DNA from: Tetramitus jugosus
Lineage: Eukaryota > Protista > Heterolobosea
Assembly: GCA_937625935.1 (NCBI GenBank)
Contig: OW569369.1
Span: 310,001 to 374,000, forward strand
DNA: 64,000 bases
Direction of reading: 5' to 3'
Under the pieces are notes generated by a model. It did not search any database and was not told the DNA's origin. It was given only the letters and a program-made list of their open reading frames with translations. The position numbers and the translations under genes are program-made. How positions within the stretch are numbered: position 1 is the first letter of the stretch; each line of letters opens with the position of its first letter. Positions 7,701 to 52,257 of this stretch are shown piece after piece.

Positions 7701-10096
7701 GGGTGTTGTTGGAGCTTTCAACATTTCCTATCTTCCCTTAATATTTTTTCCTTGCTTGATATACTTTCTCCGAGAACGTCGAAGAGTCCTGCTTTTGTTT
7801 GGAACTATTCCAAAGAATGTAGTCGGTGGAGTAGTTCATAGATTAAAGGAGTCATGTTTAAGGGAAGAGAATCGCTCACCTCGTAAGAAACAAACATATT
7901 TGACCCCAAAATTCAAACTTGGTTGCTTGTATGAAATCTTAAATCTACTTCTCTCTTTGTAACGTGTACATACTAAAATGATTTTATTCGTAGAATTTTA
8001 ATTGCTCTCATGATCGAAGGGGTGTGCATCTTTCTTTGTATTTACGATTCATCTCTCAGAATTTTCAACAACAACGGTACCACGGAACTCGTTTTGCACA
8101 CTGGCTTTGTCAGTAAATCTGTGAACCAAGTGACTTTTGCTGTTCGAGAATTGGTGTTTGCTCAATACTTCCCGTTGTTGGATTACAAGTTTCCTGTAGA
8201 AGAAGTAGTCCGAATAGCGAATGATGGTAAAAAGAGTTGGGATATTCTACGATTCGGTGTGGGAACAAAGAGTGGAGAGGGATTCATCGGGTTTGATAAA
8301 ACTATTGATAACTTGATTACAGATGATATCTGTCTCCCCCATTTGTTGAGTGCATTGGACCAAAAGAAATTCTATTGCAGGAGTTTGAATTTCTTGTTGG
8401 AATCAGCTATTGTTAGAGGGACAAGTTTGATTTTCAATTACAAACAGATGAGCTTGGAAGAACAACTTAGTGAATTTAATGATTTGGAAGCGATCGCGAG
8501 AGCATTTACTACAAAATTGGTATGTGTTTCACTCAATTGTTGTGCATCACAAGATTACTGCATACGGATATTGGTTGACTTAACAATCTTCTTGAGAATA
8601 GGATCGTGTCACATCATTGTTCGCGAAGAAGTCAGATGAAACAGCTGGTCTCTTATTTCCTATCGAGTATATTTATCTCATTGCGTTTGTAATTTTGCTA
8701 GTTCTGATAGTATTGATGAATTCTGCCATCAATCATGAAAGGAGAATTAATCATGAGATTCGAAAGCTGCTATACTTTTTGCCTGAGGAGGATATACTTG
8801 GCTTGCCTGAAGTATCGAACTTTATCAATACATATTCGTTCCTTGCGAAGCGTAGGGTGGTATTAGACGAAACTGATAAGACCAAGGCAATCTTAGACGG
8901 ATCTACCGATGGTGTAATTATTTGTGATGCTAATGGTGTTATAACAGAGGCAAACTCCGCAGTTAAGACACTATTCCAGCTATCTGACGTAGATATTATT
9001 GGAGCCAGTGTATCGACCTTGTTCCGAGATAGCGATGTTTTACTTGCAATCAAGGAGTTAGTGAAGTGTGGTAAGGGGCTTAATAGAGAATACAACGCCG
9101 TTAGTAAGAAAACAGGCGAATTTCCTTCGAAGGTATCGATGAGCACAGGTTTATGGGGTACTCAACAAGTGGTTGCATTATTTATCAGAGACTGTACCAT
9201 CGAAAACAAGCAAACCCAACTCATTAACCAAGAGAAGAAAAACAGTGAGAACTTGTTGCTCAACATTCTTCCTGCTCCAGTGGCTATGAGACTAAAGAGG
9301 GGAGATAGCAATATTTCTGAGAATGTTGATGACGCCACATGCTTCTTTAGTGATATGGTTGGTTTTACGAAGTTAAGCAGCACAATGGTTGCTTCAGAGC
9401 TGGTAGAACTATTGAATGATATCGTAAATACATTCGATGACTTGTGCCTTGAGCACGAACTGGAAAAGATCAAAACAATTGGGGATGCCTATTGTAAGTA
9501 ACACTTCATCCAATCAATTTTTCTTTTTGCTCTAGTTCTGACAAGAATTGATAGTTGCTGTGGGTGGTCTCTCTGGAGCATCCAATCACACAGAGAGAGT
9601 GATTCGATTTGCCCTCGATGCCATCAAGTCTCTTGATAAGTTTCAGGGTAAGATCCAAATCCGGTGCGGTTGTCACACGGGTCCACTCGTGTGTGGAGTG
9701 ATTGGGAAATCAAAGTTTGCTTTTGATGTCTGGGGTGATACTGTCAATATTGCTTCTCGAATGGAATCCACAGGTCTACCCGGTAAAGTGCAATGCAGTC
9801 GCTCTGCGTACGAGAGAACTCACGATGTTTTCCATTTCGAGGAACGTTATGGCATTTATGTGAAGGGAGTGGGAGAAATGACGTGCTACATTGTTACGGC
9901 TCCCAAGCATACATCTCACGATAGTCAACGCAGAGGAAGTATGTCCAGTTGCAACAGTCGGGAAGCCCCCAGATCCAATTTGCTCTTTGAAGATCTCGGT
10001 GGGACAACGATGGAAGAGCTCCAAGATCCCAATTCGAGTTCGAACTTTCCTTCTCTGACAGAAGAAACATTGCTTCAACACCAGCAGAACCAATAA
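4800..10096 (+). CDS. Multi-exon membrane adenylate cyclase with N-terminal TM/TmcB-like helical region and a PAS domain
   Basis: Same-strand ORFs joined by about 7 GT-AG introns (e.g. 5070-5139, 5815-5879, 8520-8601, 9495-9554). PAS-like ILDGSTDGVIICDANGVI. Class III cyclase FFSDMVGFT, KIKTIGDAY, FDVWGDTVNIASRMES; the Lys/Asp pair indicates ATP specificity. Confidence 0.88.
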
Positions 10097-26031: not shown

Positions 26032-28680
26032 TTATTGTTGTTGTTGTTGTGTTGATTGCTGGTCTTGTTGTTGCTGTGCGTCAACAGTGATTGTGTTGTC
26101 ATCATTGTTGATTGTTGAGGGTTCTTCTGCCACAGGGTCAGAGGTTCGTTCACGACGAGTAAACATGGAGTACGTTCGCACCACTCGTTCATCGTTGGTT
26201 GGAACGTGAGGTTCCCACGATAGCTCCACTCTTAGCTTAGTGTTGTCATTGTACAGGATGGGACGCAAAGCACTGTTGCTGCGTGTCCTTGTGTGCTTGG
26301 AGACAGTAGGCAAGTCTAGTTGCTGTGCTGTTGGTTGCTGTTGATGTATTGGGTTCTGAAAGTTGCTTGACAATGATTCGAGCTCTACCCACAGTTGAAG
26401 CGGCGTGTTGCCTGTGAGTGCATCAAAGTTGAGCTCATCCAACTCGATGCAACCTTGAGCCAATGGGACGAGTGGCAGCGGATCGATTTGTTTGTGGAAC
26501 ACTTGAAACTCTAACTTCTCAACTTCATGGTTACTGACGTACATTGATAACGTCTCGTTCCAAGCTGGATTCTGTGTTCTTGAAATACAACTCGTTCTTT
26601 GTGGCTTCTTCCACCACACTTGATCCAACTCCTTTTCACAACCAGTCAAACTCAATTGTACAAAAGCATTGCTGGAAGCAATTTTCAGAAAATCTGGATG
26701 AGGTAAATTCACAGCTTCAATCACTTTGACCTTCAATACTCCTTGTGTCAAAAAGAAAGACTGTGCACCAAATGCACCAAACACGATAGACAAGAGGTTG
26801 ACACCTCTAAACAGATTAATAATTTTGGATCGTTCAACACTGGCATTCTTGATCACTTGCTCAGCATCCACAGTCTTTGTAAACTTCTTGTAAGCCATGG
26901 AGATTTTCTGAACGACAAAGCTGTCGAGCCTGCGAGACTTGACAAGATCGAGCCATATGACATCATATGTCTCAATACCAAAGGATCTTAGGAGCTTATT
27001 CACATAATTTTGCCACTTTTTCTGATTGGTGTTCGATATGACATTGCCATCTTCTCTGAAGAAACAGTAAGAGCTATCGTTGTCGATGGTCCACTTCTTT
27101 CGTTCAGCATTCCACTTGAATTCACCTCCCATTCTTGCAGGTCCTCTACCAGCACTAATGTTCTCCACTCTTCCCAGATGATACACGCCTGTTGCTGTCA
27201 AATCTCCATGCTTGACCGATGTCCTGTTCGGAGCAAAATTGTCTTGCTTATCAGGACAGAACGTAAAATTGCAATCAGCATCAATCACCCAAATATAATT
27301 GTTCTTTGTTTGTAGCACTCTGTTCTTACCATCTATCGTGTACTGTGCATTGAACATTTTTCGAATATTAACGTCCACTTTTCGATCCTTGCGCTCCAAT
27401 CGATGCTTGATCCGTTGTCTCAGATTGTGCTTTTGTGTCACATTGGCATACTCTGTGTCCATGTGTGGCAGAAATTCGTTCAAATGATTACTACTATGGT
27501 GTCCATCCAATTCTTCATCATCGCTATAATAAACATCTTCGTCATCGTCTTCGTCTTCGTCATCGTCATCATCCGACATGACTTCTCTCGTAATGATATC
27601 ACTAATCTCCACTCGATGAACATTTTCTTGCACAGATGCCACAATGGCATCACTCTCCTGCATCAATCGTCTCTCGTAGGTATCATCTTGCAAGATGACC
27701 ATCTCTTCTGTCACTTGATTCAATCTTTGATCATACTTGCTCATCACTATCTGATCAACATGATGATGATGATGAGAGTGAGGGTCAATTGTTGATCCTA
27801 CAACACCTTGTTGCTCATTGGTTTCATTGACTTGAGCTACAACAGCATCATTGTCGTCTACTGTAGTAGTTGCTGTTGTCGTTATTGTTGTTGTTGGTTG
27901 ATTATGATTGGCCAACAACAGTGCAGCGGCAGGAGAGAGGAGCAAACCACATAGATTCAATTGCATGTACTCTTGTAGTTGACTCTCCATGGGATGTGCT
28001 TCTGATTGGAAAGTGACCCACTTTGTCTCTGGATAGCTCTGATGATCCTTGTAGTACTGCACAAATGCCCTATTCTTCTTGTTCTTCTTATCATCATCAA
28101 CACCATTACCATGACTACCATTGTTAATGAGTAGTGATGATGAGACAGAAACAGGTAATTGATGATATTGTTGCTCTAGTGCCGCTGCAGTTGTAGCCAC
28201 AGATGTCGATGCAGATGTTGTTGTGATTGTGGTTGACCAAGTGTCCAATCTCTCATACAGTGTAGCTCTCTTGCTCTGACTGTTGGCAAACGACAATCGA
28301 AACACTGTCGGTGGAACATGATAGGGTATTTGCTCTGGTGAATAAGTGACGGCAGCACTGGGAGGCACATGTTCCTTCAAAAGCTTTTGAGCTTTTTTGA
28401 ATTTTCGATAGCGTTTGGAGGTGGATGAAGCAGTCGTGTATTCAGCTAAGTAAGTATCTTCATCACCATCATTTTCATTGTTGGGGTTATTGTTATTGTT
28501 ATAGTTGTTGTTATGGTTGTTGAGATGAGTTGTTGTAGTGAATGTGGAAGTATCGAGTTCAATGTTCTCTGATGCTTGTTGTTGTTGGTGGTGAGGTGGT
28601 CGACGTGATGATGCTGGTGGAGGAGAACGAAAAGTGTCAAGGTTGACCAGTGGATCGGTATCTGATGACTCTTGGCTGAA
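26032..28680 (-). pseudogene. C2-domain protein gene separated from its likely start codon by a transposon insertion
   Basis: Long open frame with a C2 domain (LKVKVIEAVNL...QNPAWNETL) but no ATG near its 5' end. The frame abuts the TIR at 28681. An ATG TTT GCA at 32856-32848, after an A-rich leader, lies just beyond the other TIR. Confidence 0.7.
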
Positions 28681-28694
28681 CAAGACAACACAGT
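28681..28694 (+). repeat. Left TIR CAAGACAACACAGT
   Basis: Exact reverse complement of 32834-32847; contains CACAGTT at 28689-28695. Confidence 0.85.
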
Positions 28695-28820
28695 TGCGTT
28701 AAAATCTCGAAAGACCTCTGAAATTGAGGCTTCAACCAAAGAGACTCAGACAAAAAACGACAAAGCATCAATGACCAACGACACAACCCTCAACCCCAAC
28801 ACAACAAAGACTTTTTACCA

Positions 28821-29480
28821 ATGAAGGTGACGACCACCAATCAGAAACAACATAACTTCATGACAATGTACACTTCAGAGACTTTCCAAAAGAAGAGAGT
28901 TAAGGGAGAGAGATTGGCATTTACCAAGGTAGCACTACCATCATCTGATGTTGATACCAGCGAAGAGAAACGTGATATACTTTTGACTGGTTTAACACAC
29001 AAACATCATTGCAACCCACTACATTTCGAATACAAACGGGACTCCGAGTTCATCGCACAGGAGAGAACATACGCATTCTTTCGTTTCAATGAATTCCTTT
29101 CGAACACATGTCACATTTTGAATAGAAGATTAACACCAGGGTTTGCAAAAGATGGTAGAGTTCATCTTGTCGGTATTGACTGGAGATTACTTGATCGTTT
29201 TTTCTGTCAGTTCAAGTGCAACAAGACTCATAAAACATTTCACCCCACTGTTGACCGCAAGAGAGTAGATGTTACATATTACTATTATGAATTCAGAGAA
29301 CTACCAGATCTGGGAGTAACAGACTGGTGGATCAAAAGACACCATCCTAATGATGAATTCAAAAACTATTCAGAATCATTCTACACCAAATTGAAGTTTG
29401 GTGTATGTACGGAGACCAACAGAGTTTGGGTCGATTACTGGCAGACCACCAGTTCAGAACAAGGTTTCATTACCGCGTAA
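28821..29480 (+). CDS. Transposon-borne hypothetical protein (219 aa), tail-to-tail with the transposase
   Basis: Intronless ATG-initiated ORF of globular composition inside the TIRs; no family recognised. Confidence 0.65.
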   Translation: MKVTTTNQKQHNFMTMYTSETFQKKRVKGERLAFTKVALPSSDVDTSEEKRDILLTGLTHKHHCNPLHFEYKRDSEFIAQERTYAFFRFNEFLSNTCHILNRRLTPGFAKDGRVHLVGIDWRLLDRFFCQFKCNKTHKTFHPTVDRKRVDVTYYYYEFRELPDLGVTDWWIKRHHPNDEFKNYSESFYTKLKFGVCTETNRVWVDYWQTTSSEQGFITA

Positions 29481-29611
29481 ATATTTTCCCCTTCATCATC
29501 TTCTTTGAACTATTCACCTCAACAACGCAAAAAAAAAAACAATCAAGATGATACAATCATGTGGCAAACTGTCCTCGCTCTATTCAGGATGCTCAACCTA
29601 TAGAAAATAGA

Positions 29612-32600
29612 TTACAACGACATTTCGTCCCAAAAGCTTCTCAAATCACTACTGATGGCTTGGGATGAGATACTTCGATGTCGTTTTGCATCTCTGTCGT
29701 CATCAATGCTCTCATCAGGTGAAGCTCGCTTCACGCCATGCTGAGAAGAGATGAGATTTTGACGTCCTGATAACTGTTGCAGTGTAGGATATACTGCTTT
29801 ATCGATGAGAGGCCTAAATGTTCGATCCACATACGCTACCCCCTCAGACATGATACCAGATACATGAGGATCGATTCGAGCTCTCCACTTGGAAATTAAC
29901 TCGTCTGAGATTTTACTGACGCGCTTGATTGGAATCTCCAAGATATTTTGTGGTTCTGATACACACTCGCTCTCCCAGTCCCCATCTGAATCGTCATCCA
30001 CAGCATGATCTACAAACTCATCACTATCATCGGAGTGGAATTCTTGGTCTCTGAACGGAATATTCCCTTCTTCTGTTTCTCCATTTTCACCACTATTGGA
30101 ATTTTTGGCGAACACGCGCTTGTTATATTCGCTCTCTTTACCGAGCCATTTCATTTTGTGCTTGCATGCAATATATATTCGGCGTAGAAGCAATAGAAAT
30201 CTCTGTAAATCAGGATCTATTTTGTTTCTCCCTCCCCCTCTACTAGACGCAGACTCCTTACATTGGGAATCAGTGGAATGAAAGGCCTCTGCGCCCTGGT
30301 TTTGCAATTGAGACCATGTAACGTCATTGTCTGCCTCTTCTGGTACATGTCTGATAATGTAATGGTAGTAATAGGAACCTTTTACATTGGGATACCTGTA
30401 AACAAGCACTATACCAAAGGCTTTACAGCATGCCTTCAAAAATTCCAAGTCACGATACTTTAGTGACTCTGAATCAGCTTCAAGGTACACTAGGTGTATA
30501 TATCTGTTGAGTTCTAGGAGAAGAAGTTCACAAGGGTCGGCTATATCTTGAATAATATCTTCTAAGTTCATCATCATCTCCGTAATCTGCAGCCCTCTAC
30601 TGAACGGAAATCTGCGAACGGTTTGGTCCATATTATCGTCATCTTCATCACCTCTCTCAGTTCTCCATGCAAATTTTCTTAGTGTTGGATACTGTCGGAC
30701 TCTCTCTGCAACTAAATCATACAACTTTGGATCATTTCTGCTGTAGAGAATGTTGGTCATCAAGTTTTCATGGGATCTGCATTTGCAATGCAACACACAG
30801 TATCGTATTTTAGCACCGACAAGTCCATTGTGGAATACTATAATCCTTTGGTTATATTGTTTGTACTGCTGGGTCACCGGGTCTGGGGCGTAAGAGTGAT
30901 GTCTCTCCGAAAGTTTACAGTCGCAGTGACCACAGAACATGCCATCTTCAAACATATTGGTGAAGTGCTGGAAGGCCTTCCAGTCATTCACAACAAATAA
31001 TTCGCACTGAAATTCCTGATCTTTGTATTTCAGACCATGTGTGGAGAGATGTGAAAGTGAAGGTATTACATGTTTGAAATGAGTACGGAATTCCTCTTCA
31101 CCTTCATCTCCTCTGTACATGGATATCAGAGTACATGAGTCGCGGGACTGAACAGCAAACACTTTGCAGTTCAAAAGAGTCAATGTCATCACCACAACCC
31201 CTTTTGAGCCATCAACACTGATTTTCGTTAATAGTTTCTGCTTCAAATGATCCAAGTCACCTGATTCATTTTCTTCAATCTCCAATAATGCCAAAACGAT
31301 TTTCACTGGATCCACACAATGTCCCATACCAGCACTACTCACAGATGGTTTCTTGCTCTTTTTGGACTTCTTTTTGGATTGTCTTGCAGAAGTAGGTATG
31401 TTCTCGGCTGACTCGTTTGCTTGTGTACCAGTTGGTAAGTACTGGAAACGAGATTTGACTTTTGCATTAATAGATTGTCTCATATTATTAATGGTATTGC
31501 TATGCTTCAATACAGAAGAGAAGTTGAAGAATTTTCGAAGGGCTTCAAACTTACCCAAACTAATGAGATACCAGTCAAGAAAGTAAAGAGTGTTCTCTGT
31601 TTCCAGGTTTCTGAGAATTGAATTGGTTTGCATCTGTGTTATCTTCCTTAGCTCAATTGCTTTGGTTTTGCATTGATTCATAATGTGCACAATGATAGAT
31701 TTAAGTTCATTCATGTTGTTCCTGAAGTAGTATGCCAGTAGTTGAATTTTCCCAGGAACTGGAGCATTTAGAGGTTCAAACACGACAGAGGCCATTAAGA
31801 TGGTCATGATAGTCATAACTTTGCTGGTCAAAGTAGCCTTCGTTGCCGAAACAAGGTCATCGAATTCTTTATGCTTCTTTCTTGCATCATCGCCTGGTCT
31901 GTTATTCTTTGACGGGACAATAACACTGCATCCACAGTTGGTACATTCATATCTCACAGAATCTTTACCAGAGAGATCGATTGACAATGGATTAGTTTTG
32001 GCTGCAGCAATTACCTCTTGATCTATTGCAATTTTCGTTTTAGTGTTGGACGATGTACATGTTGATGAGGGGGTGTTACTTTGGGGTTGTTGTGGTTGTC
32101 GTGTGTGTGTTACAGAATCTGTTTGCAAAATACAAGACTGTGAATGTGTTAATTGGTTAGGTAGTGAATTGGGGTATGTTGGTGTCCAATACTGTATCAT
32201 AGAAGGATGAGAAAACTGGCTGTGGTCTTGTGATTGAAAATCATCCGTACTGTAAGAGTATGAATTGTGTGTCTGAGAATATGTTGCTAAGTAGTTTATC
32301 CCAGCGGTATCGAGATAACTGGTTGTTGCAGTGAGATCAACGACAAGTTTGTCACAGATCCAATGAAGAAATGAATTCCTCAGATTTGAATAGTTACTCA
32401 GGAGATAACCAACAACCCATGGAATAGAGTATCTCTGCTTTCTACCAAACTGACATGTGAACACTTCATTCTCTGTCATATATCCTGGTTTTGCTTTTGG
32501 CATAGATGCATTATTCGTGGTTGCATGTGACTTTACGAAATCACGACTGATATGTAACAGATATCTGTTGTCCTTGTGAATTAAACCCGGAGCTAGTCCA

Positions 32601-32674
32601 TTTATTATTGTTGTGAACGGTATATCTAGCTGTTGAGAGGCCACTGTCTCCTCTGGAGGGCCTTTGATGCTCAT
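29612..32674 (-). CDS. RAG1/Transib-family DDE transposase (1020 aa, uninterrupted)
   Basis: Collinear RAG1-core-like motifs: KISVDG (D488), VQSRDSCTLISMYRGDE, VNDWK (D564), FCGHC, VLHC, YYHYIIRHVPE, QNQGAEAFH (E796). Confidence 0.85.
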   Translation of the reverse strand: MSIKGPPEETVASQQLDIPFTTIINGLAPGLIHKDNRYLLHISRDFVKSHATTNNASMPKAKPGYMTENEVFTCQFGRKQRYSIPWVVGYLLSNYSNLRNSFLHWICDKLVVDLTATTSYLDTAGINYLATYSQTHNSYSYSTDDFQSQDHSQFSHPSMIQYWTPTYPNSLPNQLTHSQSCILQTDSVTHTRQPQQPQSNTPSSTCTSSNTKTKIAIDQEVIAAAKTNPLSIDLSGKDSVRYECTNCGCSVIVPSKNNRPGDDARKKHKEFDDLVSATKATLTSKVMTIMTILMASVVFEPLNAPVPGKIQLLAYYFRNNMNELKSIIVHIMNQCKTKAIELRKITQMQTNSILRNLETENTLYFLDWYLISLGKFEALRKFFNFSSVLKHSNTINNMRQSINAKVKSRFQYLPTGTQANESAENIPTSARQSKKKSKKSKKPSVSSAGMGHCVDPVKIVLALLEIEENESGDLDHLKQKLLTKISVDGSKGVVVMTLTLLNCKVFAVQSRDSCTLISMYRGDEGEEEFRTHFKHVIPSLSHLSTHGLKYKDQEFQCELFVVNDWKAFQHFTNMFEDGMFCGHCDCKLSERHHSYAPDPVTQQYKQYNQRIIVFHNGLVGAKIRYCVLHCKCRSHENLMTNILYSRNDPKLYDLVAERVRQYPTLRKFAWRTERGDEDDDNMDQTVRRFPFSRGLQITEMMMNLEDIIQDIADPCELLLLELNRYIHLVYLEADSESLKYRDLEFLKACCKAFGIVLVYRYPNVKGSYYYHYIIRHVPEEADNDVTWSQLQNQGAEAFHSTDSQCKESASSRGGGRNKIDPDLQRFLLLLRRIYIACKHKMKWLGKESEYNKRVFAKNSNSGENGETEEGNIPFRDQEFHSDDSDEFVDHAVDDDSDGDWESECVSEPQNILEIPIKRVSKISDELISKWRARIDPHVSGIMSEGVAYVDRTFRPLIDKAVYPTLQQLSGRQNLISSQHGVKRASPDESIDDDRDAKRHRSISSQAISSDLRSFWDEMSL

Positions 32675-32833
32675 AGTTGTGTTTAGTAGTTTTCTGCTTC
32701 TTCGTTTTGGTTCAATATTCTTCTAGTTGCTGGAACTTTGAAGAACTGGAACTTTCGAAAATATTCTCCGCCTGTCGGAATGGGCGTTGTAAGCTCGGTT
32801 TCTGCCTTCTCGACAACCGTGGGTGTTTTGGAC

Positions 32834-32847
32834 ACTGTGTTGTCTTG
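32834..32847 (-). repeat. Right TIR
   Basis: ACTGTGTTGTCTTG; read inward it is CAAGACAA-CACAGTG, with a perfect RSS heptamer at 32839-32833. Confidence 0.85.
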
Positions 32848-33094
32848 TGCAAACATGTCGTTGACAATTTTGTTGCAACTCTTTTTTTTTTTTTGATTTT
32901 GTTTTTTGACTGTTGAGCGTCAAGAGCTGCGAACTTGTTTCTTGTGAGCTGAGTTCCATGAGCCAGATATCTGTAACCCTGATTCTCTCAGCTTGGCCAT
33001 TGGTTGAAATCTGTTTTTGACCGGCCAGTCATTGCTTCCCCAAGCCAAAACAAAAACTTGATTGGAAAAATCACAAAAAAGTGAAAACAAAAAA

Positions 33095-46008: not shown

Positions 46009-46292
46009 GATGATGATGTTTTGTTTTTGTTGTTGTTGTGCTTTGTGTGAAAGATTTTTTTGATGATGATTTTTTTTATTTGTCGCTGATTGTTGTTTGG
46101 GTGCGGGTTGTTTTTTGAAAAGCGGGAGGTGCTGGTGAAATCACAGACGCGGAGAAAAAAAGATGAATTTTACAACAGATCACTGATCACGGAACTACAT
46201 TCTGCCTCTGAAGGATTCTTGTAAAAGTTGTCTTTAAACTTCGTTGCAATATCATGAAAACTCCATTTTCCATCACCAGATACTGCCCTCCT

Positions 46293-46391
46293 GACCTAGA
46301 GACAACTTTTTCGAGATATTCGATGACATATGACTAGGTTCGAGAGGAATGGATATGTAAAGTTGTCTCTAGGTCGATGACATATGACTAG
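46293..46391. repeat. Interleaved 17-bp inverted repeat and 18-bp direct repeat
   Basis: GACCTAGAGACAACTTT (46293-46309) pairs with AAAGTTGTCTCTAGGTC (46359-46375). TCGATGACATATGACTAG occurs at 46320 and 46374. Confidence 0.85.
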
Positions 46392-46839
46392 ATAAATATC
46401 TTTCCAGTTCTTGAATTGTTGTTCTAGGTTCCAATTGGTTTAAGGATCTTGCCAAGGCTCGAAAAGAAGGTCATGTATATTTTTAGCAAGCTTTCTCTGC
46501 TTTTCGTCGTCCATCATAAAATCTAATAACTGTGGCACATTTTCATTGAGTGAAATGTTATAATACTCAAAATCTTCCAACAATGCCTCCAACAGATGGT
46601 CTAGTATTTGTTCCAGTGCATAGTATAGGGCTATCAACTTTGATTGCTCTCCTAACATGTTCAATCCCATTGTAACTCCATATTGTTTGCACGTGATTAG
46701 AAAGGTTTTTAGCTCAGTTGTAGGTATTGGTACCCCGACGTGATTGGCGAATTGAATCAGGTGGTCCTTGCTCCAATGAATGAAGACTTTGGAAGTTCGA
46801 AATGAACGGATAGAATTGCTGATTATGATGGGTAAACAA

Positions 46840-47715
46840 AAACCAATTGGTCCTGGATAGCAAGATCAAAGGTGCTCTCAAAGCAAAATCACACTCAACC
46901 AGCAGATAAATCATGGTCTCGGGACTTTTGCCACAAAGAGAACATCACCTATGGCATAGTACAGTTTCTGAATGACCCCTTTCATGTGCAAGGTACCACT
47001 CCTGACCGGTGGTAGAACCACAGTTCCAATAGAACATTTCAAGAAATAGTTCCGCTCCACTGACTTCTGTGACTCCGAATCAAGCCACCATCCTCCATTC
47101 AATCCAATAAACTATGTCCTCTGTTTTGTAAATGATTCCACTACTCCTTCTCGAATGTTGGGATTCTTTGACCACACCATTGGCTAGCACAGTAACTTCC
47201 GGCTTCCTTGTTCTTCTGGCAAGCAGTGACTCGTTGCAAGCAGTTCTAGGTATTCTTGTAGCCGGACCAATCCCTTTCATATGGTATCTTTTCTTTGTAT
47301 GACCATAACTCACCGCAAGGCTATTCTTGATACATGAGTTGAGAGGTGCCAAACAATGCTACACTTCTTACACTCATGAGCATTGGCAGAACTGATGATA
47401 ATTCGCGAAGAGTGGAGGAGTTTGGCACACCAGGCGAGGTATGTACTTACCTGGATTTGAATAGGCTCGATCTAACGAACGTTTGACCTAGCTTGACATC
47501 ATCAAGCGTATCCAGCAGTAGTATTCGTGCCTCAGTGTCCTTCTTTCCAGACAACATACTGGCGAGATCCCAGAACTGGATCTTCAGTGCCTGGAACCAT
47601 TCCAACTTACGATCAATCACAAAGGGGCTCTTGATAAACTCGAATTGGTTCTTATGCTCCAGTGCTGAAGATTGTAACCATCACTCTAGATACGGATCAA
47701 TTGTTGCCTTTCGTT
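46840..47715 (-). mobile_element. Older degraded non-LTR retrotransposon fragments (probably two copies)
   Basis: 47715-47585 reads ERKATIDPYLE*WLQSSALEHKNQFEFIKSPFVIDRKLEWF, a paralog of 51690-51575. About 47090-46890 reads WWLDS...RSGTLH...CSLCGKSPETMIYLLVEC, a decayed zinc knuckle. Confidence 0.8.
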
Positions 47716-47731
47716 CCAGCGAATTTTGCGC
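47716..47731 (+). repeat. 16-bp target-site duplication CCAGCGAATTTTGCGC (second copy 52138-52153)
   Basis: Identical direct repeats bracket the retroelement; the left copy is immediately followed by T9. Confidence 0.9.
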
Positions 47732-47946
47732 TTTTTTTTTGATACAACGCGCAGTTGCTCACTTTATTGTTTATCATTCTTTCCATTAGTTTCACTTATA
47801 CTCATTGTTAGGGCTCGGCACAAGTTCGAGTAAACTCGCGAATAAACGAATCAGTCAAATTCAAAAACAGGTCCAAATTGAAACTTTCACACACCCAAAA
47901 ACAAATTCAAATTCGAACAAACTCGAGTGACTCGCAAATAACAAAA

Positions 47947-50022
47947 ATGAATCAAGAGGAAAATATCCACAAGAGACGCCGAATTCAGCATGACTATAGT
48001 CAGATGGACCCCGAAGAGGATGATGATCTTCAAGAATACGAAGATATCACACATATTGATCAAGAGTTATTGCAGGAACTAACCAACGCAGCAGCAAAGA
48101 AAAACAAGTCAAGAAACACAACAAGAATCAAAGAAGAAGTTCGGTTTGGAAGCATTTTTCGATATCACCGATAAATAGAGATGGTGGAAAAGAAAATGAC
48201 CAAATAATCAAATGCAATTACTGTGATACTTGGTCTGTACTGGAGAGTTGCCGTCACAACTCAACCAGCAATATGCACAGGCACCTTGAAAGTGACCATC
48301 GAGATAAAATGGTCAATGAAAGCAGTATTTCGACACCTGAGTTAATTGTGGACAAGAAAAAACAGTTTTATCTAGATATTGTACGCTTAATTGTTATGGA
48401 GAATCTTCCATTCTGTTTTATCGAAATTCCATATCTAAAACATTTATTTTCGAACAATGGAGTTGAGCATGCTGGAATATCGGCAAAGAAATTGAAAAAG
48501 TTAGTTGAATCAGAGTTCAAGAACTCAAGAGAACAGTTGAAACACTTACTACTTTGTACATGCAATTCAATTGCGATTTCCGTTGATGCTTGGACTAGCC
48601 CACACAATAATTCATTTATTGGTATCATTGGTTCATGGATTGGTCCTGAATTTGAACTTTATGAGCGCGTACTTGATTTTAAATCCATCCAAGGTTGTCA
48701 TACAGGATCCAATATGGCGGAACATGTCATTGAAACGCTTAATGAATTAGATTTACTAACCAAACTACTAACCATAACATCAGACAATGCAAAAAACAAT
48801 GACACACTTTCCAGTTGTTTTTTCACTGAAAACAGCATTGAGGGGTAGACACGATCGAACAATCAGATATCAAGGAACTGAAAGTCTCATTCGTTGTCTT
48901 GCACACATAATCAATTTGGTTGTAAAAGCTATAATGTCTGTCATCAAAGCTGGAGCTCGGAAAGACTCTGAGGATGCAATCAAAAAGTTGATGAAAAATG
49001 AGAAAGTTGGTTCTCTGAGTGCTATCATGAAAGTAAGAACAATGGCATTGTATGGGTGGGGTAGAGGAAGTACGCACAGAAAAAACAAGTGGTTGGAATT
49101 GGTTACATCTGATCAACAAAAAAAGCTCATTGACTATGATGTCGACACTCGGTGGAATTCTACATTCAAAATGATCGATGATGTATTTCGTTTCCCTAGT
49201 GAGTTGAATCGATATGCAACGGATTTGGTCCCTGACCTTTTATGATCAAGTGATGACTGGATACAGCTAACAAACTTGAGGGTGCTTCTGAAAACGTTTG
49301 ACGACTTTACAAACTTTTTATCAACTCAGAAACCACAGATTGTTAATTCACTAGCAGTATATTATGCTCTTCATGACTTGTTAAATGATGTGATCGGCAA
49401 AAGGAAGAAATTTGCAAATTTGACAGATGATTTGGTGAATGCAGTGAAGTTAGGTAAGAAGAAGTATGATAAATACTATTCTCTGATGGATAGCAGCCTT
49501 GTTTACTATATAACAGCTACATTAGATCCTAGAACAAAGGCTATATGGATAGACAAACATTTAAATCAAAATGATAGATTATTTTTGACAAGAGAAGTCA
49601 TCGAAAGAATCAAATTGGAATATAATGTTGAAGATTTAGAAGAGGAAGGTATAGATGATTCACCACCGAGTTCGGATTATAGTTTGAATCAATATACCCT
49701 TCGAAGCATTGAGACAAACAAGGCAGCGTCCGACGTTGACAGATATTACAAAACTGGATCCGTTGAGGGAAGCAAAGAAAAAACAAATTTGGAATTTTCA
49801 TTGGGATGGTGGGGGGATAATCAACAATTATATCCGGTTATGTCTTTAGTAGCAAGAGACTATCTGGCAATACCAGCTGCCACCGTTTCCGTCGAGAGAT
49901 TATTTAACCAAGGTCGCGATGTTATCCAAGTAAGAAGACATTCCATGAAAGATAAAACATTTCGATGGGTCATGCTACTCAAGGATCACTATAGGCACTG
50001 CCACTCCGAGGATATAAAATGA
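47947..50022 (+). pseudogene. hAT transposase with BED finger, disrupted by about 2 frameshifts and 1 stop
   Basis: VWKHF...CNYC...HRHLESDH (BED finger), SVDAWTS, ITSDNAKN, RCLAHIINL, TRWNST, DYLAIPAATVSVERLF. Split over four ORFs, with TGA at 49243. Confidence 0.92.
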
Positions 50023-50072
50023 CACTTGCTACGGAATCAGTTGGAGGTCCACGCTCAACTTGGCCAAAGCAC

Positions 50073-50243
50073 CAATGTGTCAATGTGGGTAAATGTGCCA
50101 ATGTAGGTCTATGTAGGTCTATGTATCAATGTGTCAATGTGTCAATCGGCCAATGTGGATCAATGTGCCAATGCACAATTGAAAACTACAGCAAGGCTGA
50201 TGAATATGTGAAAATGTACCAATGTTGGCCAATGTGTCAATGT
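50073..50243 (+). repeat. Degenerate CAATGTG-type short repeat array inside the hAT
   Basis: Many CAATGT(G) units downstream of the transposase stop. Confidence 0.75.
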
Positions 50244-51096
50244 GTGATGGATGAGAGTGAACAATAATATAATGGGTCGAAGGTGGAAAGACTGTTCTAT
50301 TCAGATAACAAGTAGGGAAGCTGGTTAGAAACCATTGTCAGTGATCGAGCTTGGATCCCAACTCATCGATCAGTGGATACTCATTCCCTAGTTGTTATCG
50401 GGGATATTGTCCAGAATTTCAATCGCCCTTACCCAAGCAGGCGACCTTTCAATATTATCTTCTGTATTATTACGAAGTTTCTTGATGATATCCTTAATCT
50501 CAGCTCTTTCCTTTCCCTTTTGTCTGGGAAATGAGTTGAGGTGAAGTGTGAGGAGTCTCCTCATCTTCTTCTTTTTTCTGTCAAGTTAGAATTACCATTT
50601 CTCGGTCGGTGTGTGTTGTCGAACCCTTGAGCAAGTCTGAGTTCACTCTCGGTCATGAGATACTTCTGTTTGAAATAGATCCAAGCAGTATTATCCACAT
50701 GCCCGGAGTACGTGACCTCTCCTCGAGAAACTAGTTTTTTCGTTATTTTGATTAAAATCACTTCACTGGTTGTGGATGGTGTTTTCATTTGTTGTCTTAT
50801 TTTGCAATTGCTGTTCCAACGGTTGAAATAATGGTCATATGGTTGATGAATCTCAAGAATCAAGAACAAAAAGATTAAAAAAGAATTGAAATATTATATT
50901 TGGTTTATTTGCGAGTCAACTCGATTTGAATCTGATCTCGTATTTGTTTGTTCTCTTTTTTCCTTCAGATTTCGAACAAGCAAGTTTCCGGCGGAGTTAT
51001 TTGCAAATAAATTCGAGTGTATTTGTGCCGAGCCCTACTCATTGTGCCGCTCGCAGAGCGGCACTTGTCTTTCCTTTCAGTAACGCTCGGAGAGCG

Positions 51097-52137
51097 TTAC
51101 TTCTGTTTGTAGTCTTTTGATTGCTGGTAAAGTGTGTGCAAAGTAACGATGCAGCGACTCTTTACCCAACTGACAAAGCTACGTGCCTTGCGAAGGGCTA
51201 ATTCTAACTTCATTCCATTCTTCACCAGTGCATCCATAACCTCATCAAGAGCTTCACTTTCAACGCCCATCATTCCCGAGAGGTACTCCCGACTGGTCTT
51301 CCGGGATCTCGGGAGAAGTACCCCATTTCTGAATACAACTTTGTCAAACCACAAATTCACATTCGATTCTCGATGCAATGGGAGTTTGAGCAGTTTGTTG
51401 TAAACTTCCAACACAAGTTTTCGACGAGCGTCTATAGCACACTTGCATCGGATCAGACAGTGAATGATGGTTTCTGACTCAATACCGCACCTTGGACACA
51501 GATCCGGTTCGTCATCATCATACAAATCATTACACACTGCTCTAGTGTGCAATGTACCGCTTCTGATCTGTGCGTGGAACCATACCAACTTGCGATCTAT
51601 AACAAAGGAGTTCTTGAGAAACTCGAATTGGTTCTTGTGCTCCATTGCGGCAGACTGTAACCACCACTCTGGGTACTGTTCGATTGTGGCCTTTCTTTCC
51701 CTGAAGAGTATCTCTTTGAGATCATCATGGCCTCTGGCGTATTGCCCATTACATCGGATTATGTGCATAAACCCCTTTGGGTGGTGTAAATCCTTGCTCA
51801 TACATTCTGGCATTGCCTTGACAGTGAGTATCAACTCTTGATAAGTTTTTAGACCAAATCCTCTGCCAATCAGTTTTCAGTGCCTCGAAACTTCTGACTT
51901 CGCCCTCTTGCAACAGTTGTTGCTTCTGATAGATTCCCGCTCTACTCAGTAACCTCAATTGCCGTGTAGTTAGGTAATTTGACAAATTACACCCTTCGCA
52001 ACGACTGTATGAGTCGTCAGTGATGATAATTCCTCTCTCGTGCAATCTCGAAGCACATCACTTCATGAAGGAGTGTTTGACGCTGTTGATTCTGTGGTCC
52101 GATTGGAAGACGTTCTCCAGTTGGAACGTTTTGTGTC
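51097..52137 (-). pseudogene. C-terminal fragment of non-LTR retrotransposon ORF2 (post-RT region plus zf-RVT-like knuckle)
   Basis: LSRAGIYQKQQLLQEGEVRSFEAL; RSGTLHT...CPRCGIESETIIHCLIRC. Frameshifted; RT core absent. Confidence 0.82.
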
Positions 52138-52183
52138 CCAGCGAATTTTGCGCAAAATATCAGTGTGAAATTAAACAATATCG

Positions 52184-52257
52184 GCGGTTGTAGATCAGTT
52201 GGTTAGATCGTGAGCTTAACACGCTCAAGGTCGCCGGTTCGATCCCGGTCAATCGTA
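52184..52257 (+). tRNA. tRNA-Val(AAC)
   Basis: GCGGTTG/CAATCGT acceptor, GATC/GATC D-stem, TGAGC-TT AAC AC-GCTCA anticodon arm, GCCGG-TTCGATC-CCGGT T-arm. Confidence 0.96.

Follow-up and report, generated by a model that had tools for sequence, protein, structure and literature searches.

Which lineage of transposons, and which mode of insertion, produced the 4167-bp element that splits a gene of the free-living heterolobosean amoeba Tetramitus jugosus is the question raised by the 64,000-nucleotide stretch analysed here (contig OW569369.1, positions 310,001 to 374,000; termed the window, with a guanine-plus-cytosine content of about 41%). The element, designated as family A, occupies positions 28681-32847, begins with CAA and ends with TTG, and harbors two convergent open reading frames (ORFs), of which ORF1 (29612-32674, minus strand) encodes a 1020-residue DDE (Asp-Asp-Glu) transposase and ORF2 (28821-29480, plus strand; start possibly the ATG at 28860) encodes a protein of 219 residues. 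Insertion was found to take place with neither gain nor loss of target bases, and the best reading is that the element represents a heterolobosean lineage of the CMCT clade with unstaggered insertion, and not a Transib or ProtoRAG element. An initial annotation, made from the letters of the window, had described an intact RAG1/Transib-like transposon with recombination signal sequence (RSS) heptamers in its terminal inverted repeats (TIRs) and a 4-bp target-site duplication (TSD); neither ORF2 nor the interruption of the host gene was mentioned in it.

Insertion without target-site duplication

Thirteen junctions were compared, namely that of the window copy, five of a second family (family B), three of elements from Naegleria lovaniensis and four of single elements; the set draws on this genome, N. 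lovaniensis and metagenomes. Within the scanned assembly (56 contigs, 26,350,207 bases), family A has the window copy as its sole full-length member, and family B is present as five 4206-bp copies that are 100% identical and lie on five contigs between five different pairs of flanks. An exact duplication of at least 2 bp was found at none of the 13 junctions, the would-be duplications of 2-8 bp showed an identity of 0.18-0.31, which equals the background, and the target sequences were unlike one another, revealing no fixed target.

At locus L062, one of the units of a tandem repeat houses an element, and a paralogous unit displays the flanks joined with nothing gained or lost, an empty site which also rules out a 3-bp TSD. 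The window locus points in the same direction. Here the element is situated after codon 3 of a host gene, in which Pfam recognizes a C2 domain only, near the C-terminus, and the start codon (32854-32856, minus strand) is severed from the body of the gene (26032-28680, minus strand). When the flanks were joined in silico with 0, 1, 2, 4 or 5 bases removed, the blunt join gave a frame of 885 codons from the ATG at 32856, whose next methionine is residue 234, whereas removal of 1, 2, 4 or 5 bases left 15-80 codons. At locus L061 the blunt join yielded 998 codons versus 376-383 for the same four removals, and the blunt join was likewise in frame at the family-B copy L033. The imperfect 4-bp TSD (TGAA/TGCA) of the initial annotation turned out to be a chance resemblance, as 4- to 5-mers with one mismatch occur at 8% of random blunt junctions and the removal of 4 bp breaks the host frame, shortening its product from 885 to 79 residues.

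Models with shifted ends (trimmed by -3 to +9 bp) were also tried, and gave no common TSD except an AT inside CAAT..ATTG at a trim of 4 bp; this model was rejected because it needs a CAATTG target, which is missing from the L062 empty site.

Ends of the element

The boundaries of the element are based on copies with other flanks and on contig breakpoints in an independent strain (described below). Perfect 14-bp inverted repeats, as originally noticed, are located at 28681-28694 on the ORF2 side (CAAGACAACACAGT, plus strand) and at 32834-32847 on the transposase side (minus strand), and inverted repeats of at least 14 bp arose in 16 of 5000 trials with random region pairs of the same size. The collection of further copies, which had been proposed as a check of the termini, bore these ends out: three family-A copies with three different flanks have the common start CAAGACAA, and both the truncated copy on contig C32 (92% identical to the window copy) and a groundwater copy at another site (L069, 98.7% identical) begin at the same CAAGA as the window copy. 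A search for short, non-autonomous family-A copies found the TIR pattern no more often than its control, and the ORF2-side end once.

The heptamer-like strings do exist, although their proposed meaning did not hold. CACAGTG (32833-32839, minus strand) occupies positions 9-15 of its end and has the counterpart CACAGTT at 28689-28695, so both lie 8 bp inside the termini. The seven bases that follow the shared start read CACAGTG in the window, AACAGTG in the C32 copy and CACAGTC in L069, and the window contains eight occurrences of CACAGTG where 13.5 are expected. Family B ends with CAATACAGTT and CAATCCAGTG, and the elements of N. lovaniensis and of metagenomic contigs with CAATACAACCAC, CAATACAACGAC, CAATGTAACCCA and CACAACAATTTA; neither family B nor the N. 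lovaniensis elements have an RSS-like heptamer at their ends. What is common to all ends is CA(A/C)-, with 5'-CA..TG-3' termini in 13 of 13 elements. The heptamer is, as judged from these sequences, incidental, and the element does not speak for the RSS being of ancient origin.

A Transib- or ProtoRAG-like element that recognizes an RSS heptamer and leaves a short 4-bp TSD could account for CACAGT(G/T) in both TIRs, for TGAA and TGCA beside them and for a closest fold in HzTransib and RAG1. This explanation has become very improbable, in that its heptamer is internal, variable and absent from sister families, its TSD would leave the host ORF broken and the 12 other junctions have no TSD.

The transposase and its relatives

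ORF1 is uninterrupted over its 1020 residues, and the RAG1-core motifs quoted in the initial annotation were all found, in the same order. They comprise the catalytic D488 (codon 31211-31213), D564 (30983-30985) and E796 (30287-30289), all on the minus strand, together with C581/C584, H629 and H771/H776, each of which, the zinc ligands among them, is near-invariant among the relatives covering that position in the alignment. Sequence searches of Pfam and PDB with ORF1 alone gave no match. An AlphaFold2 model spanning residues 215-875 (mean predicted local distance difference test score, pLDDT, 78; core mostly above 90) had matches with a Foldseek E below 0.001 only to RAG1, BbRAG1L and HzTransib, and VIA-align placed HzTransib first (6PQX; Z 23.5, 13% identity over 412 residues), followed by RAG1 residues 460-1004 (Z about 22-22.5) and BbRAG1L (Z 20.8), with a root-mean-square deviation of 3.7-3.8 Å across 412-433 residues for 6PQX and RAG1. 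Other transposases scored far lower (P element 12.9, ISCth4 10, Hermes 7.8). When PDB was scanned with a hidden Markov model (HMM) of the transposase family, RAG1 chains alone were ranked, weakly, and the language-model neighbours of ORF1 were RAG1 clusters as well as cnidarian and fungal clusters lacking names. The predicted fold and catalytic residues are thus solidly of the RAG1/Transib type, as had been suggested from the motifs. The model-based match gives no ranking of RAG1 over Chapaev or EnSpm; the solved CMCT structures found are those of RAG1/Transib only.

The RAG1-core/Transib-like region, delimited by structure alignment and near-invariant residues, covers about residues 354-854 (30113-31615, minus strand). 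Since the alignment with RAG1 residue 460 sets in at ORF1 residue ~354, the non-core N-terminal part amounts to about 350 residues rather than the ~480 first estimated; the CxxC assigned to it was confirmed (C244/C247; 31934-31945, minus strand), lies in a low-confidence part of the model and is retained by most relatives covering it. This part further contains a low-complexity stretch, predicted helices and an N-terminal domain (about residues 35-125; 32300-32572, minus strand) that is weakly common to relatives in the alignment and had no match in Pfam, PHROGs or PDB. A suspected likeness of the N-terminus to KilA-N/Bro-N was unsupported by searches of the same three collections.

A word-based protein search with the ORF1 core gave no match, and an exhaustive HMMER search recovered 58 relatives. 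The only named ones come from Naegleria lovaniensis, which bears out the heterolobosean setting first supposed from the window. No relatives turned up when contig collections of metagenomes, viruses and prokaryotes were scanned, and BFVD yielded nothing beyond one fragmentary Sylvanvirus match. Some relatives match DUF1280 and Transposase_21, weakly. A tree restricted to family members revealed deep diversity and gave the window protein a long branch.

The second gene

Homologues of ORF2 adjoin the transposase in at least ten elements, either convergent or in tandem. Both families, A and B, possess them, as do the C4, C16 and C25 elements, N. lovaniensis and metagenomic contigs, and the orientation is mostly convergent; at L065 (4104-9014) and L067 the homologue and the transposase point the same way, with the homologue upstream (weak HMM matches, E 0.001-0.005). 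An element of 1314 bp on contig C24 (L056:1009-2322), bounded by TIRs (CACAACAATCTA), has an intact homologue of ORF2 and lacks a transposase.

Sequence searches of Pfam and PDB with ORF2 alone gave no match. Its model (pLDDT 81, above 90 over most of residues 80-215) consists of a long helix followed by a beta-sheet, with an alpha+beta domain at residues 75-215 and no propeller. The best Z was 4.4 among 48,161 PDB representatives, no Foldseek match reached an E below 0.001 and the best Atlas TM score was 0.31; such weak scores from a predicted structure are not proof of a new fold. ORF2 is somewhat more probably than otherwise a non-catalytic partner subunit, analogous and not homologous to RAG2. 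It is possible, with clearly lower probability, that ORF2 serves as a regulator or anti-silencing factor, and a nuclease function is improbable.

Mobility and transcription

In run X4, which derives from an independent groundwater strain, the positions at which contigs part from the window sequence are precisely 28681 and 32847, the window locus shows a joint that skips the element, and the element sits elsewhere; the insertion is therefore polymorphic between strains. These data show that the element moved recently, and, as read from its sequence, the window copy is intact and probably active.

The library type of a further run, X7, is not on record, and its contigs look gene-bounded. It includes a 744-nt contig spanning ORF2 (28752-29495), pieces of ORF1 and a piece that crosses the right end (window 32585-32894), whereas the host gene at 28102-28626 is represented by the non-window allele only. 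If X7 is RNA, these contigs would be suggestive of a transcribed ORF2 and a silent window allele of the host gene, and the contig over the right end raises the possibility that transcription from the host promoter may run on into the element and cover the transposase. A 57-codon frame within the element was also seen to open at the ATG of the host gene.

Mechanism of insertion

It is probable, taking these results together, that the element is a cut-and-paste transposon of a heterolobosean CMCT lineage that combines RAG/Transib-type excision with unstaggered strand transfer and employs ORF2 as a partner or regulator. RAG1 and Transib bend the target DNA by 150-170 degrees and attack 5 bp apart, and they provide the chemistry from which the early steps are modelled (PMC12337333). 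A transposase dimer would bind the terminal 10-14 bp and nick the element ends, upon which the flanks would form hairpins and blunt ends with a 3'-OH would be released. The two 3'-OH groups would then, to judge from the junctions, attack directly opposite phosphodiester bonds of the target with a stagger of 0 instead of 5, leaving two nicks for ligation and no gap to fill, with ORF2 acting as a partner subunit or regulator.

Several points weigh against this proposal. Hairpin formation and direct strand transfer are assumed; only one true empty site (L062) was read base by base, and the frame tests are blind to changes of 3n bases. In addition, at 7 of the 13 junctions the same single base stands on either side (p about 0.04, post hoc); a 1-bp duplication may thus arise now and then, which is ruled out at L061. 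The X4 copy carries a 484-bp deletion in ORF2.

A different route to the same junctions would be that the transposase merely excises a blunt-ended element, which is then pasted into double-strand breaks by host end-joining, perhaps after blunt cleavage of the target by ORF2. RAG signal ends are indeed blunt and joined by non-homologous end joining (PMC12337333), and such a process would yield neither a TSD nor a target motif. It is nevertheless unlikely, because every complete element has retained its two ends down to the last base, no loss is seen in those targets that could be checked and ORF2 matches no nuclease fold. End-joining is, moreover, usually less clean than these junctions. Unstaggered strand transfer accordingly stays the preferred, though probable rather than certain, mechanism.

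Relationship to known transposon families

The CMCT clade unites EnSpm/Mirage/Chapaev/Transib and RAG1, with TSDs of 2-5 bp for all lineages (PMC12730594). The element shares with it the C(2)C (C581/C584) and H(3-4)H (H771/H776) motifs lying between the second D and E, as well as CA..TG termini, and differs from the described lineages in making no TSD. With Transib it has in common the closest structural match, the DDE, C(2)C and HxxxxH residues and short TIRs. In contrast with Transib, however, it possesses CAA ends instead of a terminal heptamer, some 350 extra N-terminal residues and a second gene, and lacks a 5-bp TSD. The assignment to Transib was given up because neither the termini nor the absence of a TSD fits it. 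ProtoRAG/RAGL elements (BbRAG1L, AanRAGL) resemble it in the RAG1-core fold (Z 20.8-22.5) and in two genes placed tail-to-tail within TIRs. They differ in their RSS-like bipartite TIRs, their 5-bp TSD and their second gene, that of the present element being no Kelch propeller and giving no RAG2 match; no RING or Chapa domain was detected here either. The element is not ProtoRAG because it has no RAG2L, no such TIRs and no TSD. Chapaev and Chapaev3 generate TSDs of 4 bp or 3 bp, which are missing here. A Chapa zinc finger, accompanied by RING or not, stands at the N-terminus of their transposases (PMC4411706); in the present family one conserved CxxC was seen, with no Pfam match, and the structure model covers residues 215-875 only. 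The host, a unicellular eukaryote like that of AanRAGL, is not new in itself, because RAG1-like elements in unicellular eukaryotes are already known from Aureococcus (PMC9435367).

Spy, of the PHIS group, is likewise a TIR DDE transposon without TSDs, for which joining is thought to be unstaggered and which has been called unique in this respect (PMC4122938). Spy, however, has an IS5/Harbinger-type transposase and an AAA|TTT target. The RAG1-type transposase and the lack of a fixed target imply that the TSD was lost independently of Spy, and the present elements would be the second group of eukaryotic TIR/DDE transposons to lack TSDs, with a transposase from an unrelated clade.

The lineage might already be catalogued in Repbase as a Chapaev-, Lanisha- or EnSpm-like one, with its lack of TSD recorded there. 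The weak DUF1280 and Transposase_21 matches of relatives, the unnamed cnidarian and fungal proteins in the nearest Atlas clusters and the description of Lanisha only in Repbase Reports speak for this, but the 2025 clade definition covers Lanisha and states TSDs of 2-5 bp (PMC12730594), the supplement to the RAG/Transib survey of 2022 (PMC9435367) yielded no heterolobosean entry and thus none for Naegleria or Tetramitus, and a 2026 survey of transposable elements masks 0.14% of T. jugosus only and names no such family. Prior cataloguing is accordingly quite unlikely. The portrayal of the element in the initial annotation as deep-branching, possibly active and altered in its end geometry stands, except that the alteration consists in having no TSD at all and not in a heptamer with a 4-bp TSD.

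Beyond the best reading, a heterolobosean CMCT lineage with unstaggered insertion, we tentatively raise a bolder view, which we regard as rather less probable than its opposite: the element may typify a branch of the RAG1/Transib clade that is undescribed and ranks as a superfamily. In this branch a newly folded second subunit, gained separately from RAG2, would have changed how the target is captured, so that transfer is unstaggered, giving a second, convergent two-subunit RAG-type transpososome that makes no duplication. A relative of the same fold attacking with zero stagger would mean that the target geometry of RAG1/Transib can be re-set, and would let nature's own variants be compared to learn what determines the length of a TSD. 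The element also shows that two genes can come to lie tail-to-tail, as in ProtoRAG, when the partner has no relation to RAG2, a point of relevance to the recruitment of RAG2. Because the copy is intact and was mobile recently, these points are open to testing, and it may provide a tool for duplication-free insertion.

Related elements and neighbouring sequence

All five family-B copies (on C3, C9, C10, C40 and C45; L033-L037) contain an in-frame TAA about 184 codons into the transposase frame, at a site which is a sense codon in the relative P0021, and no frame-keeping intron was seen. Family B has moved recently despite this TAA, for which read-through, re-initiation or help in trans is proposed. 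The C3 copy (L033) seems, by eye, to lie inside an ORF resembling the C-terminus of a non-LTR (long terminal repeat) retroelement. In the distant relatives P0042, P0044 and P0021 (L067, L066 and L060), a C-terminal Ulp1 protease domain or a Zn2Cys6 cluster is fused to the transposase.

At L039 (C4:469000-476500) two related elements stand back to back, their ORF2 genes pointing away from each other and their ends meeting near L039:1850, and a reverse-transcriptase ORF (7888-9501) is nearby. The C16 element (L040, C16:402000-411500) has an unusual neighbourhood, its flanks consisting, by eye, of a ribonucleotide-reductase-like gene, a PIN-like ORF and a restriction-endonuclease-like ORF. Elsewhere in the window, a 6-kb stretch without long ORFs (46009-52257) ends at a confirmed tRNA-Val gene (52184-52257).

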